Of a stretch of DNA of 64,000 nt, positions 17 to 60,976 are shown piece after piece. Source of the stretch: Thalia democratica (Eukaryota); NCBI GenBank assembly GCA_965202585.1, contig OZ241830.1, positions 8,432,001 through 8,496,000 on the forward strand, in the 5' to 3' direction. Below the pieces are notes generated by a model. It did not search any database, was not told the origin of the DNA, and saw only the letters and a program-made list of their open reading frames with translations. Both the position numbers and the translations under genes were made by a program. Within the stretch, counting starts at the first letter, position 1. Every line of letters starts with the position of its first letter.

Positions 17-3000
17 CTAAGATTCTTGGATATTTTAACATTTACAAAGTATTAGATTTAAGCTATTTAATACGAAGATAACTAATAACTTTGAAACTAA
101 AAATTTCTCAGAGAAAGCAAAACACAGCAGCCGAAAATGCCCAATCAAAAAGTCTCAACCAGTGGAGGTCAGCAACAAAGTGGTCAGCAAAATCCTCAAT
201 CTTCAAGTGCATCAGCGACACCATTTAAAACTCACATGCTTAACTCATATATGTATTTAGTGAATAACACATCAGCACTAAATTCCGTTCCTAATAGTTT
301 TCATTCACATTTGCAACATATTGTTTCAAGTATGGGCATTGGAATGACGGGAGGTGATTTACATCATTTTGAAAATGAAGGAAAGTTTGCAAACTTTGAT
401 AAAAAGAACAAAAAGTCAGCCGGACAAACATTTGATGGAGTCAAAGTTGCACTTAATTATGGAAATTATAATGACGACTGTGCAGTTTGTTTATGTCCTT
501 TAAAAGAAAACGTACCGGTAAAAGGTACAGGTGTTTGCGAGCATATCTTTCATGAAAAATGTCTGATAGACGTTTTAAAGCAAAGCCACAAGTGTCCTGT
601 ATGTCGTGCTGTTATTATAGAGAAGCTTGGTCCATGCCCAGATGGCTACATGAAAGTAAAAACTTGTAAAACCATGCATTGTGCAGGCTATGAAGACTGT
701 GGAATTATTCAGATTCAATACGACCTTCTTGGTGGAGTACAAGGACCCCAGCATGGAAACCCGGGATCTAGGTATAATAGTGATCGTAGAAGAGCATTCC
801 TGCCTGACAACAAAGTAGGTAGAAGGGTTCTTGAGCTGTTCAAAAAAGCATGGAAGATGAAACTGACGTTCACGGTTGGAACTAGTTTGAGCACTGGAGA
901 GAGGGACGTGATAACTTGGAATGATATCCATCACAAGACTTCTCATTATGGTGGACCATATGGTTACCCGGATGCGACTTATTTGGAGCGAGTCACTGCT
1001 GATATGCACGCTCTTGGTGTTAGGTTGGATGAGTAATCCAGCTGAATGATGTTTAATTAGGCCAGTACGCACAACAAAGTTATTTTACTGTCCTGTACTC
1101 GTAGCAAATAAATTTAAAATTGCGTATTTTGGTTGTAAAAATTATTTAAGCTCTGGTTACTGTTTAATTTTTACAGTGATAGATTTATTAAAAACAAGTG
1201 GTACATAGAATATTTTTAATATACGTGATCATTTTGTACCATTTTGCTGTTTTTTTGTACAGCAAGGGTTTTCTTTCATTTATTTAAAAAGAGTATTATA
1301 AAGTTTATCTTTATAATGAATATGAAATATTAGTTTATCTTTATAATAAGAATCTTATAAGAGTCAAAAAAAAATTATGAACCCTTTTATCAAAACAACT
1401 CAAACAACTAATATTAACTACGCTCAAGGCTTTTCTATCATTAACGCCTGAAAATTTAGTCTAAGTTTAAAATTACAACACTATGCGAGCTTAAGGTCCT
1501 CTAACATTTGACAAGCATTCGTTATTTTTATTATTATTATTTTAAAAACTACTGTTAACAGCATTAAGATAACTTTTAGATCTTCATCATAAACTTCAAA
1601 ATATCTAGTGTAAGTTTTGCTTTATTTGTAAAATGGCCCAATGACCTGCTTACTTCTTACGCCACCCGTTGAGACTTTTTTATCTTATTGCCCCCAAATT
1701 TTCTGAATTCGTCCCCAAGAAGACCACGTGGTCCCCTTTAGGAATCCCTGTTCTACAGTTACTGTTTATAAGAAATCAAGAAAAAGACTAACCGTCTAAA
1801 TTACTTTTGATATTTTAATTATACTCTTTCGAGACTAAGTTTTATATACTTGTACTATAAGCTTTACGTGGGTGTTTTGGAATAACAAAAACTTCTAGCT
1901 TATATAATATATAGTATATACTTGCATCACATATCGAATAACTTAGTAATGGCAAACTTGTTTTTTTTATAGGGCAAGAAAAAACTAAAGACTCTGAAAG
2001 ATTTTTAGAAACATATCTTGGTAGGCGGAGAAAACTCTTGAAATAAATCTTTAACACTACATGGGAAAAACTTTTAACAAGCATCACTGTGTTCTAAAGG
2101 CACTTTGTAAACATTAATAACTAAAATGACCATAAGTGTTTGATTTGCATAAAATGTACACAACCCTAAAAGTACAAACCATAAATGTTAGTTGGCGGGC
2201 CGTACGTTGCCTACCATAAAATAAACTCATATATTTCCATTTTATTACTTCTACCTATTGATCTACCGGCTCTGGCCTGATATTGTTTTAAAATAGATCT
2301 GGATTTCAACTACGATACGGCCGGGTTCAGATCAACTAATTTGATTAAAAAAGTAGTAATTTTTTATTAAATTTTGTGTTTTTATTACATAGATCTATTA
2401 CCCTAATTAAAAAAAAAAGTGGTTTGAAAAGATACAAATAAAATATCAAGCTTTATAAAACCTTTAGTATTAGTACTTTTATAAATACTAGTTGATGTAT
2501 ATTGTATGTTTACAAATATTTTAAAAGTTTTTTTGGTAGCTAAAAATGTACAAAAGTGTTCAATATAAGCACACAATTTTAAATTTTCTTCTGGTAATCG
2601 TTGGAAAATATTTATTTTTGTTTGAAAAATAAAATCATACTCACCGATTCATAGTAAATTTACTTTTCATTACTCATTGGTGTTTAACACTGTTGTATTG
2701 CTATAAATAATCAAAGAAAAAAAAACTTAAGTTAAGCAAAGGCCATGTTGTAAGATTTTGAAGTAAGATTTATGGCCTCTATATTGCCGGAATTTGATTC
2801 AGTGTTACAGTTGTTGGAATAAAAGGTCTTTTTTTAGTTATCTGAGTGCTTGTGGTTTTAGAAAATTTTATCCATGATAATGTGCCAAAACTCCACAGAA
2901 TACCGCTTGCCTCTAACGGTAAATTCAGATAAGAAGTTCAGTTTCTAATCGAAAAGAAGAAAAACACATAACAATTAAATTGTTTAAAATTATGACAAAA

Positions 3001-3045
3001 GAATAATTGGTTCATTACGTTGCGTTTATTGATATTTTATTCTTG
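17..3045 (+). repeat. Left arm of a ~3-kb inverted segmental duplication (partner ~41650-44650)
   Basis: 17-136 matches the reverse complement of 44528-44649. 3001-3035 (gaataattgg...ttgatat) matches the reverse complement of ~41660-41695. Colinear coding and non-coding similarity in between, with many substitutions and indels. Confidence 0.92.
112..1036 (+). CDS. DTX: Deltex-family E3 ubiquitin ligase, RING-H2 + DTC terminal exon (copy 1); any upstream exons lie outside the window
   Basis: RING-H2 C-x2-C...C-x-H-x2-H-x2-C...C-x2-C (CAVC...CEHIFHEKC...CPVC) followed by Deltex C-terminal motifs AFLPDN, FTVGTS, ITWNDIHHKT, GYPDATYL. Acceptor tctcAG at 110-111; the frame is open from 113 through the ATG at 137 to TAA at 1036. 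Confidence 0.9.
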
Positions 3046-10500: not shown

Positions 10501-12841
10501 TTGAATTGAACTTATTCAACAACAATAGCTTAATATTATTTATTCTAAAGCTTTTATTTAGCATTTTATATGCCTTAAATTGAAATAAAACTTGTAAACC
10601 ACAATTTCTAACCACAAGAAGTTTAAAATTTAATAGGCACAATTTTGCTAAGAAACAAACAAACTATATAGAATAGTGTAGTAATACTTACTAATCAAAT
10701 AGTAAATGATTGTAAAATAATTTCTACTAAGGCTTACGTTGCTATTTGTCTTATCTAACTTTCATACTTTTTTGATAATTAAATATTTAGTCTGGTAAAA
10801 CTGATTAAATCTATTTAGATGTATATCACTACTTGGTTATAGCAGTAGACTAAAATTATTCAAAACTATTCAATTTTTACTTCAATAAAACGGTTTAATT
10901 TTACAGAAAATTTAGCTATTTGTTAAGTTTCAAAATAAGGTGATGACAAAAAATTATTTATTACGTTAACTTTGCAAGTTTAATACCTTTTTATTTATTG
11001 TTATTTTACTAAACTAATGTTATTATACTAAACTAATAAATGAGATAAAAAAAGCTATTACATTTATCTAGTTATAATTTGCACTTCAATCCTAAAAACA
11101 AAAGTTTTGATATTGTACACAGTTACGAATTATAACTTGCAGGTAATTTAAAGTTCTATTCTGTTAATGATACAATATTCTTTAAGTTTTAAGACTTAAA
11201 CGTGACAAATTTACTAACAAACTATAAACATTTTAACAGCATGAAACGTATTTTAAATATTTCGTTATACTTCGCACAAAAAAACATAAACAAAACCAAC
11301 TTCCATCTCATCGTGATCAATGCAAGTGTCTATTACGAATAGAAAGCAAGGTGGTGGTGTCGGTTTGTCGGGTAGCTTGTACTCGATAGTGGAGTACTGC
11401 GGGTGCAACTCTGCTGGCTTCATGTTCTCCGAAATACAAGAGTAGCTCTGAGGTAGCTGGTAACAAATGATAATGATTAGTTATAAAAACTTCTTGATTT
11501 ATTTAGATCGTCAAAAGTTTAGTATGAGTAAAATTTGTTGTTTTACTAATATAATGAACAAGATTTTTATTCACTTTTAAGTATATGTCCTTAGTAAAAG
11601 TGTAACACTTAAAGACGACTAAAAGCTTGTTTAGAATTTAGTAGTTATTTATACAACTTATTTTTGTCAGGTGTTTTAATGGAATTAATTCCCAAAAGTA
11701 TCTTACCTTATTTCTATTTGTACAAAAGTTGCATGTCCAGTACTTTCCAACGAAATCAATTTGGCTGCAATATAATTAGTTAAGTCAATAATAATAAAAG
11801 AATTAAACTTGTAACGTAATAAAAGTTAAAACACAACAGTTTGTTTAATTCTTTTATAATTAATTTTTTTTTTTTGCAGTTCTATTCGTTTTTATTTACT
11901 AATGATTATAGACTTAAAGTCAGAAAAAATAAACTTATTAAGAAACAGAACAATTTAAATTTTAAGACTTTGTGCATAAGCCGATACTAAGTTGACTAAT
12001 CATAGCTTGTTAAAAATAAGATTTCATTTTAAAATTTACTATACAATAAATACACAACTACTTTAAACAACAGCCACACAAACTGCATTAATAATATCTT
12101 GAAAACCAACCACTTTGGGTTCATGTACGCGCCGCAGTCTTGCCTATTGCAAACGACAGGCGCGTAGCTCACATGGGATAACTTGTCATCCGTGAACTGC
12201 TTGAGGGGAGTGTAGAGGCACGCGAGCGGAACGATCATCTTCTGTTCTGTTTGAGAGGTGATAGGGAAGCAGTTCCACGTGAACCTGACCCCGTCGTGGA
12301 TTTCACCATCGTTCTTGATCGAGTCAAAGTAAGGTTGAGCATCGTATTCTTGCGTGTCAGCTTCTTGCACCATTTGTTGTTTGTTTTGATGCATCATTTG
12401 TTGCTGGTTTTGTTGCACCATTTGTTGTTTGTTTTGATGAACCATTTGCTGCTGGTTTTGATGAACCATTTGCTGCTGGTTTTGATGAACCATTTGCTGC
12501 TGGTTTTGATTCACCACTTGTTGTTGGTTTTGATGAACCATTTGCTGCTGGTTTTGATTCACCACTTGCTGCTGGTTTTGATGAACCATTTGTTGTTGGT
12601 TTTGATGCATCTTTTGTTGCTGGTTTTGATAAACCATTTGCTGCTGGTTTTGATGCATTATTTGTTGCTGGTTTTGTTGCTGGTTTTGATGCATTATTTG
12701 TTGCTGGTTTTGTTGCTCGTTTTGATGCATCAATTGTTGCTGGTTTTGATAAACCACTTGCTGCTGGTTTTGATGAAGCATTTGTTGCTGGTTTTGTTGC
12801 ACCTTTTGTTGCATCAGCTGTTGTTGGTTCAAATGCATCAT
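4591..12841 (-). CDS. SEC23: Sec23 (COPII inner coat, Sar1 GAP), 17 exons, 941 aa, with Gln-rich N-terminal extension
   Basis: Phase-consistent GT-AG exons: 12841-12111, 11764-11707, 11456-11301, 10221-10054, 9745-9675, 9507-9204, 8980-8868, 8757-8634, 8364-8185, 7727-7621, 7426-7258, 7115-7038, 6671-6516, 6209-6123, 5958-5834, 5455-5350, 4683-4591 (2826 nt). Motifs: DGVRFTWN, zinc finger (C-x4-C...WTCNFC), FLFVIDTC, FLGGPCTRGPG, GAIGPCVS, DTFFVVLIYHG, HGGSQSRFLL, VLTDD. Confidence 0.95.
12365..12835 (-). repeat. Coding minisatellite, mostly 24-bp units (HQNQQQ[M/V]V), in Sec23 exon 1
   Basis: Repeated catttg(c/t)tgctggttttgatgaac-type units on the + strand; translated repeats are visible in ORF 12029..12841. 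Confidence 0.9.
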
Positions 12842-41649: not shown

Positions 41650-44600
41650 TATTTATGATAATATCAATAAACGCAACGTAATAAACCAATTATTCTTTTG
41701 TCATAACTTAATCAATTTAATTGTTATTTGTTTTTCTTCCTTTCGATTAAAAGCTGAACTGCTTATCTAAATTTACCGACAGAGACAAGCGGTATTTTAA
41801 GGATTTTTGGCACATTATCATAGATAAAATTTCTTAAAACCACAAACACTCAGATAACTTAAAAAAGACACTTTATTTCTGCAACTGTAACACTGAATCA
41901 TATATCGGCAGTATAGAGGCTATGAATTTACTTAAAAACCTTACTACATGGCCCTTGCTTAATTTAAGTTTTATTTTTACCTTGATTGTTTATAGCAATA
42001 CAAAAGTGTTAAACACCAATGAGTAATGAAAAGTAAATTTACTATGAATCGGTGAATATTAACTATTTTTCAAACATATATAAGTATTTGCCAACGATTA
42101 CCAGTCAAAAATTTGAAATTGTGTACATTTTATTGAACATTTTAGTAAATTTTATAGCTACCAAAAAAACTTTCAGAATATTTGTAAACATAAAATATAC
42201 ACTAACTACTATTCATATATGTACTAATACTTATAAAGGCTTTTTAAAGCTTGATGCTTTATTTGTATCTTTTCAAAACACTTTATTTGAATAAAGGTGC
42301 TACATCTATGTAATACAAACACTTATTTAAAAAAAATAATCACTATTTTTTTAATCAATTTATTTGATCTGGGTCCGGCCGTACCGTAATTGAAATCCGG
42401 ATCTATTTTAAAACAATATCAAGCTAGAGCCGGTAGATCAATAGGTATAAGTCATAAAGTGGAAAGATATGAGTTTAGTTTATGGTAGGCAACGTACGGT
42501 ACAAACCAACTGACATTTATGGTGTGCAATTTTAGGGTTGTGTGAATTTTATGCCAATCAAACACTATAGATCATTTTAGTAATAAATGTTTTTAAAGTG
42601 CCTTTAAAACACAGTGATGCTTGTTAAAAATTTCTCCCATGTAGTGTTAATGAGTTATTTTAAGAGTTTAAAGAATATTATAATTAATTTTCTCCGCCGA
42701 CCAAGATGTGTTTCTAACAATCTGTTCGAGTCTTAAAAAGTTTTTTGTTGTCCTGTTTAAAAAAGTTGTCCATTCCAAAGTTATTTGATATGTGATGCAA
42801 GTATATACTATTTTTTATATAAGTTTAAAGTTTTTGTTATTCTAAAACACCCACGCAAAGTTTATATTACAAGTATAAAAAAATAAACGTCATGAAAGAC
42901 TTAATTAAAATATCAACAGTAATTAAGAGTATTATCTTTTTCTTAATTTCTTATAAACAGTAACTGTAGAACAGGAATTCCCAAAGGGGGCCACATGGTC
43001 TTCTTTGGAACAAGTTCAGGAAATTTGGGGGCAATAAGATAAAAAAGTTCCAAAGGGTGGCGTAAGTAGTAAGCGGGTCATTGGGCCATTTAACATATAA
43101 AGTAAAGCTTACACAAGATATTTTGGAGTTTATGATGAAAATATAAAAAAATATCTTAATGCGGTTTACAGTTTTTTTCAAAATAATAATGTTAAATTAA
43201 CGAAGGTTCTTAAAATATTAGAAGGCCATAGGCTTGCATACGGTTGTAATTTTAACTTAGACTACTAAATTTTTAGCCGTTAATGATAATTGGTGTAGTT
43301 AATATAAGTTGTTTCAGAACTAAGGGTTTACAACTTTATTAGACTCTTTTGAGACTCTTATAAGCTTTATAATACTCTTTTTTATAAAAAAAGAAAAGAA
43401 TAACCCTTGTGTACAAAAAGAAACAGTAAAATTGTACAAAATGATTACATAAATTAAATATATTCTGTGTACAACTTGTTATTAATAAATCTATCACTGT
43501 AAAAATAAAAACTGTAACCAGAGCTTAAATAATTTTTACAACCAAAATAAAAAATTTTGAATTTATTTAATACGAGTAGAAGAACGTAAGATAACTTTTT
43601 TTTTGCGCTCTGACCTAATAAAAAATAAATTAGCTGGATTACTCATCCAACTTAACACCAAGAGCGTGCATATCAGCAGTGACTCGCTCCAAATAAGTCG
43701 CATCCGGATACCCATATGGTCCACCGTAAAGAGAAGTCTTGTGATGGATATCATTCCAAGTTATCACGTTCCTCTCTCCACTGCTCAAACTAGTACCAAC
43801 TGTGAAAGTCAACTTCATCTTCCAGGCTTTTTTGAACAGCTCAAGAACCCTTCTACCTTCTTCGTTGTCAGGCAGGTATGCTGTTCTATGATCACCATAA
43901 TACCTAGCTCCCGGGTTTCCATGCTGGGGTCCTTGTACTCCACCAAGAAGGTCGTATTGAATCTGAATAATTCCACAGTCTTCGTAGCCTGCACAATGCA
44001 TGATTTTACAAGTTTTTACTTTCATGTAGCCATCTGGGCATGGACCAAGCTTCTCTACAATAACAGCACGACATACAGGACACTTGTGACTTTGCTTTAA
44101 AACGTCTATCAGACACTTTTCATGAAAGATATGCTCGCAAACACCTGTACCTTTTATCGTTCCGTTTTCTTTTAAAGGACATAAACAAACTGCACAGTTG
44201 TCATTAATATTTTCATCAATAAGTGCAACTTCGACACCATCAAAGTTTTGTCCGGCTGATTTTTTATTCTTTCTATCAAAGTTTGCGAACTTTCCTTCAT
44301 TTCTAAAATCACCTCCCGGCATCCCAAAGCCCATACTTGATACAATATGTTGCAAATGTGAATGAAAACTACTAGGAACGGAATTTAGTATTGATGTGTT
44401 ATTCACTAAATTCATGTATGAGTTGAGCACGTGATTTTTAAATGGTGTCGCTGATGCACTTGAAGGTTGAGGATTTCGCTGACTATTTTGTTGCTGACCT
44501 CCACTGGTTGATACTTTTTGACTGGAATTTTTCGGCTGCTGTGTTTTGCTACCTCTGATAAATTTTTAGTTACAAAGTTATTAGTTATCTTCGTATAAAA

Positions 44601-44650
44601 TAGCTTAAATCTAATACTTTGTAAGTGTTAAAATATTTAAGAATCTTAGC
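41650..44650 (-). repeat. Right arm of the ~3-kb inverted segmental duplication
   Basis: Reverse complement aligns to 17-3045, including the shared MITE remnant (42366-42445 vs 2258-2340). Confidence 0.92.
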
Positions 44651-47295
44651 TGCAGAAGTAAGAAGCTGTAAGCAAAGTTTTTTTTTTTTTAATTGACAGC
44701 TTTTTTGTCTTGATTCTAACTTTCGTTACTTAAAGACTCAACTTTTTACGGTTAACTTGATAGTGCGTTTAAAAACCGTTATTTTAGTACTTTTCTGTTG
44801 TTTTATAAAATAAAATTATATTTTTTTTAATATAAAATGAAAAAAAAAAATTTTTTTTTAAATATAATTTATTAGACGTTTATCAAAAACGATCGAAGCC
44901 TTTTTTAAACAGATGTTAACAAAGCAATAACAATCTTAATAGTATGTTCATGACGAACTATTCTGTCTTGAAAGTACAATTCGAAAACCCAATAATATTT
45001 ACCATTAAATGCAATTAACTATAAACAAAACGTTTTACTACTGGGTGTGCCTTTTTGGGTAAAAGTAAAAAAAGTAAAAGTATTTATTAAAAATAATTTA
45101 GAAAAAGTACGGTTTGAATTATTTTTTTCTCTTACATTTACTTGTATACAAACACAAAAAAATAAACCTTTGAATTAATACTAAAAAAAAAACACAGTTT
45201 ACATAATAAGACTTCAGCTTATTATGATTGTTTAAAAAACTTCAAACCTGTTTTTAGTCATCTTAAACTGTTTTATTAACTCTTTATAGTCTTTTAGCTC
45301 CTCAACTGGTACCCACGAGTTTTCATTTCTAAATATTTCGATAATTTTGTATTAAAATAATTTTTGACTCAAATTAGTGTTAACAAAACAGTTTCTTTCA
45401 GTTAATTAGTATAATAAGTATTGTCAAGAAGAAAAAAAAAACTTGCTTGAATACATTCGTTACATGACGAATCAAGTTTTATTAGTTTAAAAAAAGTCTA
45501 TTTTTTAAGACCTAAGTATAAATAAAATAACAAAAATTTAAAATAAATTGTTCCAGAAGGTCTATTTAATAGAAATCCAAAAGAAAAAATATCCACTTAT
45601 ATTATCAAATAAAGTTAAAAACTTGTTTTAGCTACGTCTCAAAAAATTAGTTAAGGGTATAGGGGCGGGGGGATCCACCTTGATTTTTACAAGTTGATCT
45701 TATTTTATAAAGTTTTATCTGAGCTATCAGTAGTTTTTAACTTCTTGAAAAAATGAAAAAAAAAAAATTAAGGTATAAGCAATCAAAGTCGGAGAACGCA
45801 ATATGTTCCTAATGGAAGGCGCAAACTAAAAACGCGAAAAAAAAACCATTTCACTAAATATCTATCTCTTCCTTCAATTTTTAAGCAATCTACTTCAATT
45901 TTTTTACAGAAAGTGTATTACTAAATTTTAAAAAGATTGAATGCAGGAGTTTTTAAACCTTTAAAAATATAATTTTTACTAAAAAAAACTACCTATATTT
46001 TTGTGTTTTTATCTAAAATCTTTTTTTTTTTTGATATTTTAAAAATTCAAACATTTAAAGTCTTTGAGACTATAAAAGGAATGTTTTCTGAAAGTTTGAG
46101 GTCTCTAGTTCAAAAAATGAAGGAGAAGTTAGGTTTTTAGTTATTTTTTTAAACTTCCGAGAAAATTGACTTCAGAAAATCTGCAGTCTGTACGTTTGTA
46201 TCGGAAAATGTTTATAAAAACTACAATTGCTTAAAAGATTTTTAGTCCTATAATTCTGGCTTGTAATTTGTACTTTAAGCTTTTAAATAAGATCAAATGT
46301 TATTTTTAGTAAAAAAAATGTCGGATCTCGCCTATGCCCTTGAATTTTTGAAAGATGAAAGATTCTACAATTGTTACGAACTTAACTTTTATAGTAACCT
46401 ATGTATACATATATAAATAAAAAGATATAATTAAGTAATTATCAAAAAAAATATATAAAATTATATGTAATAAAAACAATTTTACATTCAGGGTTACCTT
46501 TTTTTTAATAAACTGTTCTAGGTGAAATAATATTGTCCAGAGTCATCTTGAGTTTATTTGAATTTCAAAAATATTATTTTAAACTTTTTAAATTTGATAA
46601 AGTCAAGTTCTACGAAATAGTTATAAAAAACGTATTATTGGAACTATATTAACTAAATACCATTTAAAATTATGCAAAAGATATGTCAACAGATTTAAAA
46701 ACTTAAAACTATTCTGATGCATTTAATGAAACAAAATTATGGTGAGTCAGCCATACTTAAATAAAGTAAAATACCATAGATATCCTTAGCTACCCCAAAT
46801 CATCAAGAAGCTTTAAATAATATCAAAAAATCCTGAGTTTTCCTGAACTTTTTAAGTATCCTGAGTTTTTAGTAATACTACACATTATTAAGAATTATTA
46901 GAAACTTAAATGCCTTAACATGAACTGTTTAATATGAAAAGCGTACAACTAGTATATTCAAAGTACTAGTAAGTTTTTATAAATACAGTAGAAAAAATAA
47001 TAGTGGTTTTCTAACGGTTTTAAAACTACGCACAGAAAAATAAAATAAATAGTTTACAATAATTAGCAAAGTAACATCTTTTTTTTAATATGAATAATAT
47101 TAAATAGAGTTTACAACAACTTAAATTAATTAGTTTTAAAAAAACTAATTAATTAAAGTTTTCTCTATCTACAACAACTAACTCGGAACAACCCTTCCAC
47201 TTTACTAAATACTCAATAGTAGAACCATAAAAACCGCTGCCTGGCGTACTCTTAGTTGCCACTCGCCTGTTTTTGATTGATTCTGCTTCTTTCAT
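43639..47295 (-). CDS. DTX: Chromodomain-linker-RING-H2-DTC (Deltex) protein, 3 coding exons, 369 aa
   Basis: Exons 47295-47183 (MKEAESIKNRRV...IEYLVKWKGCS; donor GTTAGT), 45328-45248 (ENENSWVPVEELKDYKELIKQF; donor GTTTGA) and 44554-43639. Both junctions are phase 2 and reading frames match. An in-frame stop lies just upstream of the ATG. Confidence 0.8.
45655..46339. mobile_element. Non-autonomous DNA transposon, Kolobok/piggyBac-like, in intron 1 of the chromo-Deltex gene
   Basis: TTAA|GGGTATAGG...CCTATGCCC|TTGA ends; internal gaaagtttgaggtctctagttc segment. Confidence 0.45.
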
Positions 47296-49413
47296 TTTAG
47301 TTTATATTACTTCTGTAAATAAATGTTGTTTTATTGTTTAATGACAACTATACACTAAATAAAACAGGGTTAAGCATCATTTTATAATCAATAACCAATT
47401 TTGTTACAAATATTAGTACGTTGGAGGCTCTGTTTAAAAAAAAGTCTCTAGATTGCCAACACTCTATAAAACTTAAACAACTAAAAATTACTAATTTATA
47501 CTTAAAACTATAATGTGTTGTTATTAACTTAACATTGTATAACTCGTTGTGAACAATACAGACAAGTTCTTTATTTCTTAGTATAAACGAATTAAAGTTA
47601 GACACTTAACAAATTTAATTTTATTATAAGAGGCGATAACTAATAAATAGTAAGTTTTATACTTATTAATTAACGGTTGACTAAAAAAATGAAATTAAGA
47701 AATCCCGCTCTAAACCAACGTTATTTTACTTCCTATAATAAAGCTTTTGAAACAAATTTTTTTTTACTTAAAGATAATTTCTACAGTTTATTCTTGGTTA
47801 AATTTTGTGAATAAGGGATAAAGTACATCGGCTAGCTGTATTTCTTTTTTTGTTTTTACCTATCAAGGTCAATTATTTGTTTTAAAACTATTTGTATACT
47901 AAAAATGGACTAACAAACTTTTATTTTCAAAAACTTGGAAGATATTCATACAAGTTTGAAAAAAGTTTCACAAAACCTTTAGTAACCCTGTAAATATTTA
48001 AAATTTAATTACATTAGTTTCGTGGTTGCTTTGTTAAAGTGACATGGTTAATATTTAGTGAATTTTAAAAATTTTAATACCAAAAGATTAGTAATAATGT
48101 TATAATATCATTAGTAAAATTTCTTAGTAAAAGAATTTAAAGATTTTCTTTATTTAAACTAATTTTTTTATTGCCAAAAAAAAAGAAGTTTACTGATAAC
48201 TAATGTTGATATTAAATAATACTTATGTAAAACACGAATAAATAGAATGTGTTAAAAAACCATGCAAACAACAATAATGATATAAAAACTTTACTTTGAA
48301 TGTTCTAGTAAAAGGGTTTACAACCTTCAAGCACAATTAAATTCAAGAGAAAATACTTGAAGAAATGTTAAAAAAATACTAAATAAAAGAACATGTTAAA
48401 AAGATAACTTCTCAATAAACAACAAATAACACAAATGTATAAATGAACTACATATTAGCAACAGTAAAGTGGTCTAGAAATAAATGTCACTGCCCAAATT
48501 CAGTATACATAGTTTGCTAACTTTTCAAAAATTTTTTACTCATTTTTTTGTCAAAAAATTGTAAAAAAATTAAATTAAAAAAATTTGAATTCAATTAAAT
48601 CTTACTTAAATTAAAATCTAGAGTTTAGATATTCTGCAATTTTAAAAGTTCTTAAATCTACAAATCTATCCTGAGTATCCTGGGCCTCGGTAATCCATGT
48701 TACAAGTTACTTTTTTCAAAGAAAATCAAATCATATCTCCCTAATTTTATTATATTCAATAAAAAAAAACATTTTCTTCTCCAAAACTTTAACAAATTTG
48801 CATCAAAAGTTGATTAAATTTATTTATGTCATGATTTAGAAAAGAACCTTATATATTTTTGATAACTTACTAAGAATATAATTCATAACTTCAGATTTAC
48901 CCTTTAAATTTTAACTAATATCAAAAATTCTTTAAAAAGTTTGCCACTCTAATTGTAAATCAAATCAAAATTCCAGGTCTTTATTGTTTTATTCTACTTT
49001 TTATATTTCTCATTTGTTAATTTCAGGTTTTTTTTAGGTTAATTTTCCAGCCTGTTTTGTTATACATCAGTTGGTAAGTAAAGATTCTCATACTTTATTA
49101 ATAAAAGAAGCAAACCCGAGTTCATAAGTTTACCCTGAATTACATCATATTATCCTTAGTTGATAAGTTACTTTATAAGCATAGTTTAAATAAAAAACTA
49201 ATAATAGTTAATGTTAATCAAGACTAAATATCTAAAAGTGTTCGTTTGATAATAAAAAAGATAGACAAATCTACCCAACTTTAATAAAAATTTTCTAACC
49301 TGAGATATATTATATTTTTTGTAAGGACAAACTAGCCTGTATAACCTGAGAAAGGGACAGTCTACTTAGACTTATACATTTTACAGTCATACAATACAAA
49401 TAGTACTAGTTAG

Positions 49414-49732: not shown

Positions 49733-50274
49733 CAGGGTTGAAAATTTTTGTGATCAAAAAGCTGTCCTGAGTGAACTTAAACTGTCTTGAGTCATCCAGA
49801 CTTTTTTAAATTCTTAATAAAACTAACTTTAACTTTTAAAAATTAATAAAAATCAAGTTTTTCTACTATACTTGTTATAACTGAAAAAAATTTAACCATA
49901 ATCATTTAATCTCATTCTAAATCTAGAATTTTTTTTGAGATTATTTATACAGAAAAAAATATCCTTAGTCATCCTGAGTTTAAAAATTATTCAATATGTT
50001 CTGAGTGTGCCGAGGTACACAAACAAAATCCACCCGCGTTCAAAATCCACCCGTTCAAAGTCCACCCTGTCTAATTCGAGAACCGCTTACCGATCGAGGG
50101 TAAGGGTTAGGGGTAACAGTAGTAGTGAAAAAACAATAAACAATATATTCTAAATATATGAAATAAGTTAAAAAATACAGAATATGTAAAAAAAAAACTG
50201 GGTGGATTTTAAACGGGTGGATTTTGATTGGGTGGATTTTGATAGCATACCGTCCCGAGTGTGTGGTAACCCTG
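49733..50274. mobile_element. CAGGGTT-type MITE with a nested MITE (50014-50251)
   Basis: Outer ends cagggttg...gtaaccctg; relatives at ~28530-28838 and ~46490-46870. The inner element has GGTA...TACC ends, three AAATCCACCC-type subterminal repeats per end, and a central agggtaagggttaggggtaa. Confidence 0.6.
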
Positions 50275-52377
50275 AATGTGTACCAAGTTTATACTTAAAA
50301 ACCTAGTTTGAACCAAAAACTTTTTTTTTTTAATAAAAATCAATAAAACTGTTATATATAATTTTTTTTTTGATGTTACTTATTTTATAATGTTACATAA
50401 TTTTTAATAATACTGATGATACTACCCAAACATACTTTGCATAAATATGTATTAAGTTTGTACTATATTAAATTTTTAATTTAGAGTTAATTTAAAACAA
50501 TAGTTAAACTTTTGTCAATATAAATCACTATAGTAAATTAAACTAAGTCTTAAAAAATATTTAAAAAATCTAAAGATTTATTCTACTTCCTAAATTTTAT
50601 ACTACTTTTATAAATTATTTAAATATTTATGAAAAATATTCACACTGTCAATAATTAAAAACTACGGGTTGTTTCATGAGTTTTTTCCTAATTTCTAGGC
50701 TTTTTATTTTCAATAAACAAAAAATACCTTACTTTTGAATTACAGGTTTTTTGGCCACCCTATGTAAAAAATTAAAAATGACATTACGTTCAGTATAAGT
50801 TTAAAATATGGTTGCCTCTCTAAATTTTAAAACTGTTTTAAAAGGCAAAAACTATACTTTGTTACCTAAAACTAGCCTGAAATGTACTGATTATTTAATC
50901 TCTTAAAAATAATGCTTATTTTCACAATCATACCTTATAATTTTTTTTATTTAAATAATAACAAAAATCATTTAAATTCAGCAAATTATAATGTTTATCA
51001 CATTTATGCTGTGATAATTTGTCAGAGTGTAAAAAGAGATAGCCACAGGGATAAAAGAAAATTAAGTTGACTTTTATAATGAAGTCTATAATAAAATTTG
51101 TTATATAAAAAATACAAGGAATAAAAAAGCATTGTTACTTGTTAATTTTATTATCGCTTAATATTTATAAAACAGTTCAGAAAATTAAAAATATTTTAAA
51201 CTACTGAGAGTTCTTTGTGAAAAACTTAGTTATCATTATTTAAAAAAATGTTTTAACTAGACTTTAGTGTTTTGAGTTGTCAAAAATGATTTAAAACTAA
51301 AAAAAAAAACATCCAGAGTTATTATGAGTGAACTTAGTATACACAGTTTGTGTCTGCCTTACTTGATAAGTATAAAAAATAATCTGAAGTTTAAGAGGCA
51401 GCAGTTGTTTATTAAAATTTTGAAATTTTCACAGAAGTATTTAATACTGCTATATACTATTTTAATCTAAACCAAGGCAAAAATTTTTTTTAAAAATGTT
51501 TAAAGTAAAAAATATTGTTGAACAATTGCTGCCTCTTAAAATTATTATAAACAAACATTTAATGAGCTGTATTTGTAAAGTTTTTACATTATTATATTTT
51601 ACTAATAAATATTTTTACTTGCATTACTACAACAAATGACTTATTAACTAAAGTTTAACTTTTTTTTGTTCTGCTTGACTAATTTTATATATATTAATAT
51701 TCATAACACAATAATCTAAGTAAATAAAACTGAAAAAAGCTGTTTGCAAAATACTAAGTCTTTTGAAACTAACTGGATCCGGACCCGGCAAAACTTCAGA
51801 TCCCGGCCGGATCCGATTTCGAATCATTTATTATTGATTAGGATCCGGCGGAATCCGGTAGATCACTTTGTTTATAATAATTTATAATATTTTATTAACA
51901 TGATAAAAATTTTCAATTGATATTAATTACAATAAGTAACAAACAATAATAATATATTAATTTGCCTCCAAATTACCAAACTTTTAAATAAAAAATTAGA
52001 ACTGATAGTAGTTGTCGGAATATTAAAGTATATTAAAAAACAAAAAGTTTTTAATGACGGTTAGTAGCACTAAAACTGTTTCTTGAAAACTAGAGCAGTT
52101 TAGAAAACAAATTTTAAATTTTATTCAAGTCAATTAAAACTTTTTTCGAAACTCAAAGCTTAATGATTAAATCTTAGTATAAATAACAGGATCCTTAAAA
52201 ACTGAAGGCTATAAAAGGGTAATGCTATTGCATTAAAAAACAAACAGAGTTTTGTTGGACGAAACCAAACTAAACGATGTTAGTAAACATTTTTAAACTA
52301 AAACTAGTACTATAAATGCTGCTGTCATGTTTTATTTGTTAAATATTTTCATAGTATCTTGTTTAGACATTACTTTA

Positions 52378-60015: not shown

Positions 60016-60976
60016 AATTTAAAATGTACAAAACATAACCATAACCTTGTTTAGGAAGTATGTTTCTGTATTCTAAAAACGGTGAACGATCATAAATTTT
60101 ACTTTTATTGATTTTCTCACTGTGATATCTGGCCCAATCAGTTGCAATCATTAACATCAGCTTGCCTAAAAAATGTTTTGAACATTAAGAAGTGTTTTGT
60201 TTTTAAAAACTGATGCATTACAAGTTGCTTCTTTTTTTATAACAAGTTTTAGCTATAAGTAAATGAATAGCTAAACATTAAAAAACTAAAAGAAAAGCAA
60301 CTCACTTAAATCATGTTGATCTTCATCAAATTTATGTACGGACTTTATTACATCCTTAACACTTGGTCGCAATTGAGGATCGACACAAAGCATTTGCTTC
60401 AAAACTTGCGTGTAGTAATTTTCAGAGCTCGAAGGAAATAATCCCTCATTTGCCCACATACAATATCTTTTATCAGTATTCGCAGCTATTTTCCAAGGAA
60501 AACATAAATTGTTTATATAAAAAATAATTATCCCAGCAGCCCAAGTATCACCTGCTTTGCTTCTAATATTACTACCTACTAACTCAGGTGCCTTGAAATC
60601 AGTATGGTCATGCAATTTCCTCATTAAACATGGTTTATCTGACACGTTGATTAGAACTAAATTGTTGTTTCTGTCAACCATCAAATTATCGAAACAAATA
60701 CTGTATTTGACATTTTCAAAACTGTTGTGTATAATGTTCAACTTGTATAACAATTGTTTGCACCATCTGTCTTTCAGTTTTTGGCTTGAAACTGTCAAAG
60801 AATCCAATAAAGTAACTTGGTTAATGCTCATTGTAAAATTAAAAACAAAGGTTTTGCTTGATACAACAGATGCTTTGATTTTCTGACGGCTTTGCTTGTT
60901 TGGATCTCTAGAATTTGACAACTTAATTAGCTGTATATGATTTAAGCAATTAGAAGTGTTTGGTAATAATAGCAAA
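60016..60976 (-). CDS. Pseudokinase exon (60976-60306) plus linker exon (60165-60016), in frame with the FAM78 exons
   Basis: Kinase C-lobe motifs FKAPE, GDTWAAG, FPW and DPQLRPS are present, but there is no HRD or DFG. Donor A|GTGAGT at 60305, acceptor ttttAG at 60166, donor T|GTAAGT at 60015, acceptor ttcAG at 59944; all phase 1. The 5' end of the gene was not found. Confidence 0.7.

Follow-up and report, generated by a model that had tools for sequence, protein, structure and literature searches.

In the 64,000-nucleotide (nt) stretch of Thalia democratica DNA analysed here (contig OZ241830.1, positions 8,432,001 to 8,496,000 of the forward strand; hereafter the window), two small exons that together encode a chromodomain lie on the same strand as, and 693 nt upstream of, an exon that encodes the RING-H2 finger and DTC domain of a Deltex-type ubiquitin ligase. 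The question that this locus raises is whether these pieces, which stand in the right order, belong to one gene. An initial annotation had proposed such a chromodomain-Deltex fusion. We find both of its modules to be intact, conserved, matched in phase and dependent on a partner exon, while the junction of exon 2 to exon 3, on which the fusion turns, was not observed. Our preferred answer, to which we give a probability of roughly 0.65 to 0.7, is that one minus-strand gene encodes a chromodomain-linker-RING-H2-DTC protein of 369 amino acids (aa), the splice from exon 2 to exon 3 being deduced from the sequence.

The exons and their borders

Joining the minus-strand pieces 47295-47183, 45328-45248 and 44554-43639 (113 + 81 + 916 = 1110 nt) gives an uninterrupted open reading frame (ORF) of 369 codons followed by TAA. 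The exons follow one another in order on the same strand, the introns between them have GT/AG borders, and a direct reading of the minus strand of 43400-47600 places both introns in phase 2. With a slash marking the splice border, the first donor is ...CCGA/GTTAGT at 47183/47182 and the first acceptor ...ATATTTAG/A at 45329/45328, and the second donor is ...AACAG/GTTTGA at 45248/45247 and the second acceptor ...TTTATCAG/A at 44555/44554. Ahead of exon 3 (44554-43639) stands ...AAATTTATCAG, and the exon closes with TAA; another TAA, in frame with the start codon, lies 9 nt 5' of the ATG at 47295. Exons 1, 2 and 3 have GC contents of 42%, 32% and 37-42%, while both introns and the flanks stand at 23%. 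The spliced frame of the initial annotation is reproduced by this reading, the first 59 residues being identical, the borders GT/AG and the phases in agreement. Taken together, the observed pattern of exons, phases and domains is far beyond chance expectation.

A chromodomain with a changed cage

Taken alone, each of the two small exons matches part of the Pfam Chromo profile below the gathering cut-off of 25.1 bits (exon 1, profile positions 2-27, E = 6e-4; exon 2, positions 30-51, E = 1.5e-3). The joined 64-aa peptide matches Chromo (PF00385) with 48.8 bits and E = 6.5e-13 over profile positions 2-51 of 53, and its nearest solved structures are the HP1-type chromodomains of CBX1, CBX5 and CBX3, at E of about 3e-6. 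Comparison of exon 1 or exon 2 singly with solved structures was uninformative, as the fragments are too short.

In alignment with CBX1 and CBX5 the positions of the methyl-lysine cage are held by K2, W33 and C36, so that W33 is the only aromatic kept and the first and third cage aromatics are replaced by Lys2 and Cys36. This bears out the earlier claim that one of the three aromatics is present, with K and C at the other places, and the same alignment confirms the loop insertion that had been noticed, as about 10 residues ahead of the EYLVKWKG strand. A chromoshadow domain (PF01393) was not matched by Pfam in exons 1-3 or in the joined exon 1+2 peptide. By Pfam, then, the predicted product of exons 1 and 2 is a chromodomain, but one without the aromatic cage of a methyl-lysine reader.

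Conservation of the chromodomain exons

With the 37 residues of exon 1 as query, a set of 1.84 billion representatives was scanned in full with HMMER, and a profile search followed. Together they gave at least eight different short ORFs, at 64-81% identity, on contigs of the Tara Oceans marine metagenomes; three of these came from the profile search, all on contigs of 1.1 kb or less. Six relatives begin with MKEAESI, while P0130 and P0131 differ from this by one residue each, and the family ends in ...KW(K/R)(G/D)C(S/P)E followed by a GT(T/A)AGT donor. In an alignment of six sequences (A4), M1-I7, R11, K15, Y23, T26, E28-W33, C36 and E38 are invariant, including the K2/W33/C36 triad of the cage; Lys2 and Cys36 are therefore stable features of the family rather than signs of decay. 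Against its relatives, exon 1 has a ratio of nonsynonymous to synonymous substitution (dN/dS) of 0.38-0.55 at a synonymous divergence (dS) of 0.36-0.45, with the substitutions clustered in the inserted loop.

Exon 2 could be followed on one of the four contigs L005-L008 that carry exon 1 relatives, L006, which alone is long enough to include it. Its homolog there, at 1635-1715, is likewise 81 nt long, has an AG acceptor and a phase-2 donor (AA/GTAAGA), and is conserved at dS of ~0.5-0.7. Reading on past the donor meets a stop after one codon in L006 and after six in the window. As the phase-2 donor is conserved and read-through ends so early, a downstream exon that starts at the third base of a codon is needed.

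These data bear on the reading that the chromodomain exons are defunct relics, left by a pseudogene or by the integrase of a chromovirus-type retrotransposon. The two missing cage aromatics would fit such an origin, and some retroelement chromodomains also lack them, but the frame is intact with its start codon and splice sites, at least eight relatives keep the core with K2, W33 and C36 invariant, and the best matches are cellular HP1/CBX proteins. Further, an intron interrupts the domain, a conserved 5' acceptor precedes its own ATG, and no similarity to other parts of the window, retroelements included, was found. We consider this reading largely refuted and very improbable.

Two further kinds of chromodomain sequence were seen. 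P0132, on a marine metagenome contig of 510 nt, is a related chromodomain exon whose N-terminal strand is longer and closer to the canonical form; of the cage positions, the first is Phe and the third Cys, and past its Cys-Ser it reads, as far as the protein tells, like the same GTTAGT donor position. It may be an HP1-like paralog ancestral to the MKEAESI family. Exon 1 was also matched by P0121, P0125 and P0126, each of which is 900-1000 aa long and carries seven chromodomains in tandem (Pfam Chromo, ~300 bits).

The RING-DTC exon

In the product of exon 3 the RING finger (zf-RING_2, residues 118-162) stands immediately N-terminal to the DTC domain (residues 170-300), and the zinc-ligand pattern C-x2-C...C-x-H-x2-H-x2-C...C-x2-C can be read directly from the sequence. 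The solved relatives are DTX2 (6Y22, 4e-42), DTX1 (4e-39) and DTX3L (2e-37), and the named relatives are DTX3/DTX3L of fishes, sharks and corals, at 45-49% identity. Pfam found no WWE domain in any exon or in the joined exon 1+2 peptide, and no KH-like domain (PF21718, present in the listed DTX3L matches) in this protein.

With the ADP-ribose-binding residues of DTX2 taken from the literature (PMC7442474), alignment to 6Y22 shows that R535, W578 and H582 have identical counterparts here and that H594 is replaced by Tyr, as in DTX3L. Across 121 relatives these columns hold Arg in 109, Trp in all 121, His in 119, and Phe, Tyr or His at the 594 position in 111. The catalytic pair proposed for DTX2 is His582/Glu608 (PMC7615817), and the position of Glu608 is Asp in this protein. 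The E608Q change is reported to impair strongly the ubiquitylation of ADP-ribose (ADPr) by DTX2 (PMC7615817), which may count against an active ligase here; Asp, for its part, keeps the carboxylate. In the same 121 relatives, this column is Glu in 71 and Asp in 39, this protein and 38 others (one or the other in 110), with Asp found among others in coral and Ciona DTX3-like proteins. Judged from this column, an acidic residue at the position is the rule and Asp a common natural state. At the level of sequence, exon 3 is thus a Deltex module in all respects other than the Glu-to-Asp change, and falls outside the WWE-bearing and KH-bearing subfamilies.

The part of exon 3 ahead of the RING behaves differently. 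The linker has a dN/dS of 0.82 against the marine metagenome contig L001 and of 0.60 against the paralog within the window described below, and by these ratios its ~120 residues evolve almost neutrally. L001 bears the best match to the RING-DTC in a set of 5.8 billion proteins (P0001), 74% identical and 67% over the full tblastn alignment, at dS of ~0.45; exact look-ups of both RING-DTC ORFs of the window returned no identical protein. The family is multi-copy and occurs only on marine metagenome contigs of its lineage.

The first 46 codons of exon 3 hold no in-frame ATG. The acceptor TTATCAG/A is also found in L001 and in the window paralog, and in L001 the frame is open and alignable as protein from the acceptor to that contig's own first ATG, as it is likewise open in the paralog. 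Just 5' of the acceptor L001 has an in-frame stop, and a 2-nt gap upstream marks the sequence there as non-coding. The conserved run of 46 open codons lacking an ATG, together with the kept acceptor, therefore calls for an upstream coding exon that ends in phase 2. The last ~95-110 nt of intron 2 can also be aligned with the paralog and L001, but the identity of ~66% at dS of ~0.45 is close to neutral, so that no constraint is claimed for this segment.

One gene or two

Since the 5' pair of exons bears a start codon and needs a phase-2 acceptor, and exon 3 lacks a start and offers one, a single chromo-RING-DTC gene is the most economical model of this sequence. Among the GC islands and ORFs examined 3' of exon 2, the RING-DTC is the only coding-like sequence.

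Several observations weigh against such a gene. Read data from six sequencing runs showed no exon-exon joints; wherever the locus is covered, the runs are DNA-like, the introns being covered evenly with the exons, while X13 and X14, from the same samples, with almost no matching words, leave the gene uncovered. On none of the contigs L001-L008 do a chromodomain exon and an exon for RING-DTC occur together: the 820 nt 5' of the acceptor in L001 contain no exon 2, no chromodomain exon occurs in the 220-820 nt available upstream in L001-L004, and L006 has 1170 nt 3' of exon 2 without exon 3. A scan of JGI metagenomes with exon 3 gave 80 loci, all distant (at most 48% identity over the domain pair) and none with a chromodomain exon nearby, and PF00385 occurs in none of the 120 RING-DTC relatives listed. 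The nearest RING-DTC relatives whose ORFs are long and unbroken (P0007, P0008, P0010 and P0011) have other N-termini without a chromodomain, and agreement of phase, taken alone, is expected in one case of three by chance. The N-termini of the long-ORF family members are acidic and S/Q-rich or strongly basic; the N-terminal region of the family is therefore variable, and a chromodomain would be one of several solutions.

Two candidate signals on L006 were set aside. An ORF resembling KFSNFD fits a phase-2 acceptor only as a short terminal exon and is probably due to chance, and a 31-nt match to an element of intron 2 did not extend on alignment and was rejected as chance.

The observations above could also be accounted for by two transcription units, a small chromodomain gene and a separate RING-DTC unit. 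In that case the chromodomain exons would either end within the 693-nt interval, giving a protein of ~70 aa, or splice past or around the RING-DTC exon, which would in turn obtain its start codon from another 5' mini-exon or a trans-spliced leader. Such an arrangement would agree with the missing junction, with the occurrence of the two parts on separate contigs and with the unrelated N-termini of other family members. It would also agree with the AATAAA motifs at 45083-45088 and 44868-44873, although these are expected by chance in sequence of 77% A+T, and the conserved acceptor just ahead of the start codon in exon 1 would fit the use of a spliced leader in this organism. Two separate units would, however, leave the donor and phase of exon 2, kept in L006 at dS of ~0.5-0.7, without a purpose, for a terminal exon does not need them, and would leave the 46 conserved open codons of exon 3 without an ATG. 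The interval 45247-44555 contains no GC island between exon 2 and exon 3 and only three candidates for an ATG-to-GT phase-2 mini-exon, all with poor donors, and 3' of exon 3, before a long terminal repeat (LTR) element, lie only short GC-rich islands without protein-like ORFs. We regard two separate units as unlikely, though as the strongest of the rival readings.

The inverted duplication

The RING-DTC exon lies within a segmental duplication, at least 3 kb long, of which the two copies, A (17-3036) and B (44649-41660), are inverted relative to each other and 85% identical by blastn over 3068 nt. Copy A includes a RING-DTC exon at 112-1036 on the plus strand, with its acceptor at 111/112 and its stop at 1036, that is 86% identical in amino acids to exon 3. 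The two exons differ by a dS of 0.125 with a dN/dS of 0.53. Copy A has also gained an in-frame ATG at 137 that is absent from copy B and from L001.

One boundary of the duplication lies 95 nt 5' of the exon 3 acceptor, which raises the question of whether the duplication itself placed a RING-DTC cassette (exon 3 with 95 nt of intron) behind HP1-like exons, in which case the fusion would be recent and possibly non-functional. The low dS between the copies and their dN/dS are in keeping with this, as is the depth, which suggests several RING-DTC copies in the genome. However, L001, at dS of ~0.45, resembles copy B for ~16-20 nt beyond the A/B breakpoint, where copy A diverges and is rearranged. 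As L001 goes on resembling copy B and the ATG near the start of the exon was gained by copy A alone, the chromo-adjacent arrangement would not be a product of the 3-kb duplication; copy A looks like a truncated or rearranged derivative and the arrangement of copy B like the older one. The chromodomain exons, moreover, show no decay, and their splice sites are conserved in relatives. We find a young chimera improbable.

The summed depth in the DNA-like runs suggests that further RING-DTC copies exist in the genome.

The 5' end of the gene

A CAG/AAGTA acceptor 17 nt 5' of the ATG, with its pyrimidine tract, is shared without change by the window and the metagenome relatives L005-L008 (alignment A2, five sequences). 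The 17-nt segment between acceptor and ATG is non-coding: L007 has an indel of 1 nt there, and stops interrupt the frame in the window and L008. A simple three-exon structure, as first drawn, therefore does not hold: conservation of the acceptor implies an upstream non-coding exon or, alternatively, spliced-leader trans-splicing in this lineage.

Relation to known proteins

The substrate choice of Deltex proteins is set by their N-terminal readers, which are WWE, KH-like or macro domains. As the initial annotation had stated, described Deltex N-termini are not chromodomains, and among the 120 listed relatives WWE, macro, KH-like and B-box domains occur with DTC, but never Chromo. In the literature library that was searched, no paper combines deltex, chromodomain and DTC. 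If the exon 2-exon 3 splice is true, the protein would bring a new arrangement of domains to a known family, although shuffling of domains around RING-DTC is evidently common and tempers the surprise.

The nearest comparison is with DTX3 and DTX3L, with which the predicted protein shares a RING-H2 directly followed by a full DTC domain, the lack of WWE domains, the pocket Arg, Trp and His, and, as in DTX3L, Tyr at the position of DTX2 H594. It differs from them in that DTX3L has KH-like repeats and DTX3 a short N-terminus, whereas here a chromodomain and a low-complexity linker would precede the RING, and in that Asp replaces the Glu608 equivalent, as in 39 of the 121 relatives. With DTX1, DTX2 and DTX4 (WWE-WWE-RING-DTC) it would share the RING-DTC module and the logic of attaching a reader to it, but their reader is a WWE pair that binds poly-ADP-ribose, and here a chromodomain would take its place.

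On the chromodomain side, CBX1, CBX3 and CBX5 of the HP1 type have the core EYL(V/L)KWKG...N(S/T)W...ELI..F in common with the predicted protein. They retain the first and third cage aromatics, which are Lys and Cys here, and lack the loop of ~10 residues; unlike them, this protein begins directly at strand 1 and has no hinge and no chromoshadow domain. UHRF1 is a ligase that joins a reader to a RING, and PRC1 brings a CBX chromodomain and RING1B together in one complex. The coupling of a fold of the histone-reader type to a RING E3 ligase is thus shared with both, but here a single chain would carry the two, along with a DTC domain, and the chromodomain is deficient in its cage; the homology extends only to the individual domains.

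Deltex RING-DTC proteins are the only known eukaryotic ligases that ubiquitylate ADP-ribose and nucleic-acid 3' ends (PMC7615817, PMC10810221, PMC11460948, PMC11467253). Were the splice true, the chromodomain would be a new solution to the targeting of RING-DTC, and the gene a natural experiment in which recognition of the chromatin type is coupled to ADPr-ubiquitin signalling. Were it false, the locus would hold an ordinary DTX3-like paralog family beside a small divergent HP1-like gene. The invariant K/W/C cage of at least six family members is useful in its own right, since it shows a chromodomain pocket that is conserved though not aromatic.

Proposed function

The protein would consist of an N-terminal HP1-type chromodomain (residues 3-60), a disordered linker of ~120 residues, the RING-H2 finger and the DTC domain. 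We suggest that the RING would recruit a charged E2 enzyme and that the DTC pocket, with its Arg, Trp, His and Tyr kept and an Asp carboxylate at the position of the catalytic Glu, would hold ADP-ribose or an adenosine 3' end beside the thioester of E2 and ubiquitin. Ubiquitylation of ADP-ribosylated substrates and of nucleic-acid 3' ends has been described for DTX2 and DTX3L (PMC7615817, PMC10810221, PMC11460948, PMC11467253), and the protein may likewise act as a DTX3/DTX3L-like E3 on ADP-ribosylated substrates and possibly on nucleic-acid 3' ends.

The chromodomain, tethered by the linker, would supply localisation or targeting. Because other residues stand invariantly in place of two of the three aromatics of the cage, canonical reading of methylated H3K9 or H3K27 appears unlikely; the K2/W33/C36 pocket more probably binds another ligand, such as another peptide, nucleic acid or a partner protein, and the invariant loop residue Tyr23 is a candidate contributor to it. 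The ADPr-ubiquitylation activity of this protein, the ligand of its chromodomain and its targeting to chromatin or nucleic acid are all predictions from its domains, and on these the protein is most likely a DTX3-like, ADP-ribose-binding E3 aimed by a non-canonical chromodomain. A more far-reaching proposal, which is speculative and in our own estimate rather doubtful, is that the family comprises lineage-specific, multi-copy reader-writer ligases fused in cis, in which a chromodomain with a cage stably changed to Lys/Trp/Cys, and with the invariant loop Tyr, reads a mark other than methyl-lysine, or nucleic acid, and delivers the RING-DTC to ubiquitylate ADP-ribose or nucleic-acid 3' ends on chromatin. 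Chromatin recognition and hybrid ADPr-ubiquitin marks would then be linked directly and physically.

Features of the locus and other observations

Table 1. Positions in the window of the putative gene, its encoded domains and the repeats around it.
Feature	Position	Strand	Remarks
Splice acceptor and 17-nt segment of 5' untranslated region	47296..47315	-	pyrimidine tract and CAG at 47315-47313, ahead of the ATG
Coding exon 1	47183..47295	-	start codon and N-terminal half of chromodomain (residues 1-37, then the first 2 nt of codon 38); donor GA/GTTAGT
Intron 1	45329..47182	-	1854 nt, phase 2, GT..AG, GC 23.5%
Very high-copy interspersed repeat in intron 1	45656..46360	.	summed word depth 1e4-6e5 against about 100-400 in the flanks, three DNA-like runs
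Coding exon 2	45248..45328	-	81 nt; C-terminal half of chromodomain (NENSW...ELIKQF); phase-2 donor AG/GTTTGA
Intron 2 (inferred)	44555..45247	-	693 nt, phase 2, GC 22.7%
Coding exon 3	43639..44554	-	S/N/G/Q-rich linker, RING-H2 and DTC; stop TAA at 43641-43639
Low-complexity linker, S/N/G/Q-rich	44203..44554	-	protein residues ~65-182, fast evolving
RING-H2 finger	44068..44202	-	C3H2C3, 8/8 zinc ligands; zf-RING_2 6.7e-10, zf-rbx1 4.8e-08
DTC domain with ADP-ribose pocket	43654..44046	-	Pfam DTC PF18102, 171.3 bits, 1.4e-50, profile 2-133/133
Polyadenylation signal AATAAA	43562..43567	-	~70 nt 3' of the stop
Duplication copy B	41660..44649	-	exon 3 with 95 nt of intron 2 ahead of it and 2 kb of flank on its 3' side
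Duplication copy A	17..3036	+	paralogous RING-DTC exon; continues beyond the window

Rfam and repeat scans of the locus gave nothing relevant. The interspersed repeat within intron 1 matches no Rfam family, lacks clear repeats at its ends, and is seen at low depth also in a run labelled as another organism. GC-rich islands (GC 0.41-0.51) without protein-like ORFs occur at 42360-42560, 42940-43140, 49960-50320 and 51720-51880, and one of them weakly resembles, in the opposite orientation, an island 3' of exon 2 in L006; these islands are probably repeat fragments.

Elsewhere in the window, a minus-strand ORF of 270 aa at 12029-12841 has a sub-threshold match to the C-terminal trimerisation repeat of phage T4 gp5 (PF22178, 26.4 bits against a cut-off of 30.9) and may be repeat-rich or low-complexity sequence. 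A second minus-strand ORF, at 60289-60975, carries a partial protein-kinase domain (Pfam Pkinase, 2.6e-10).

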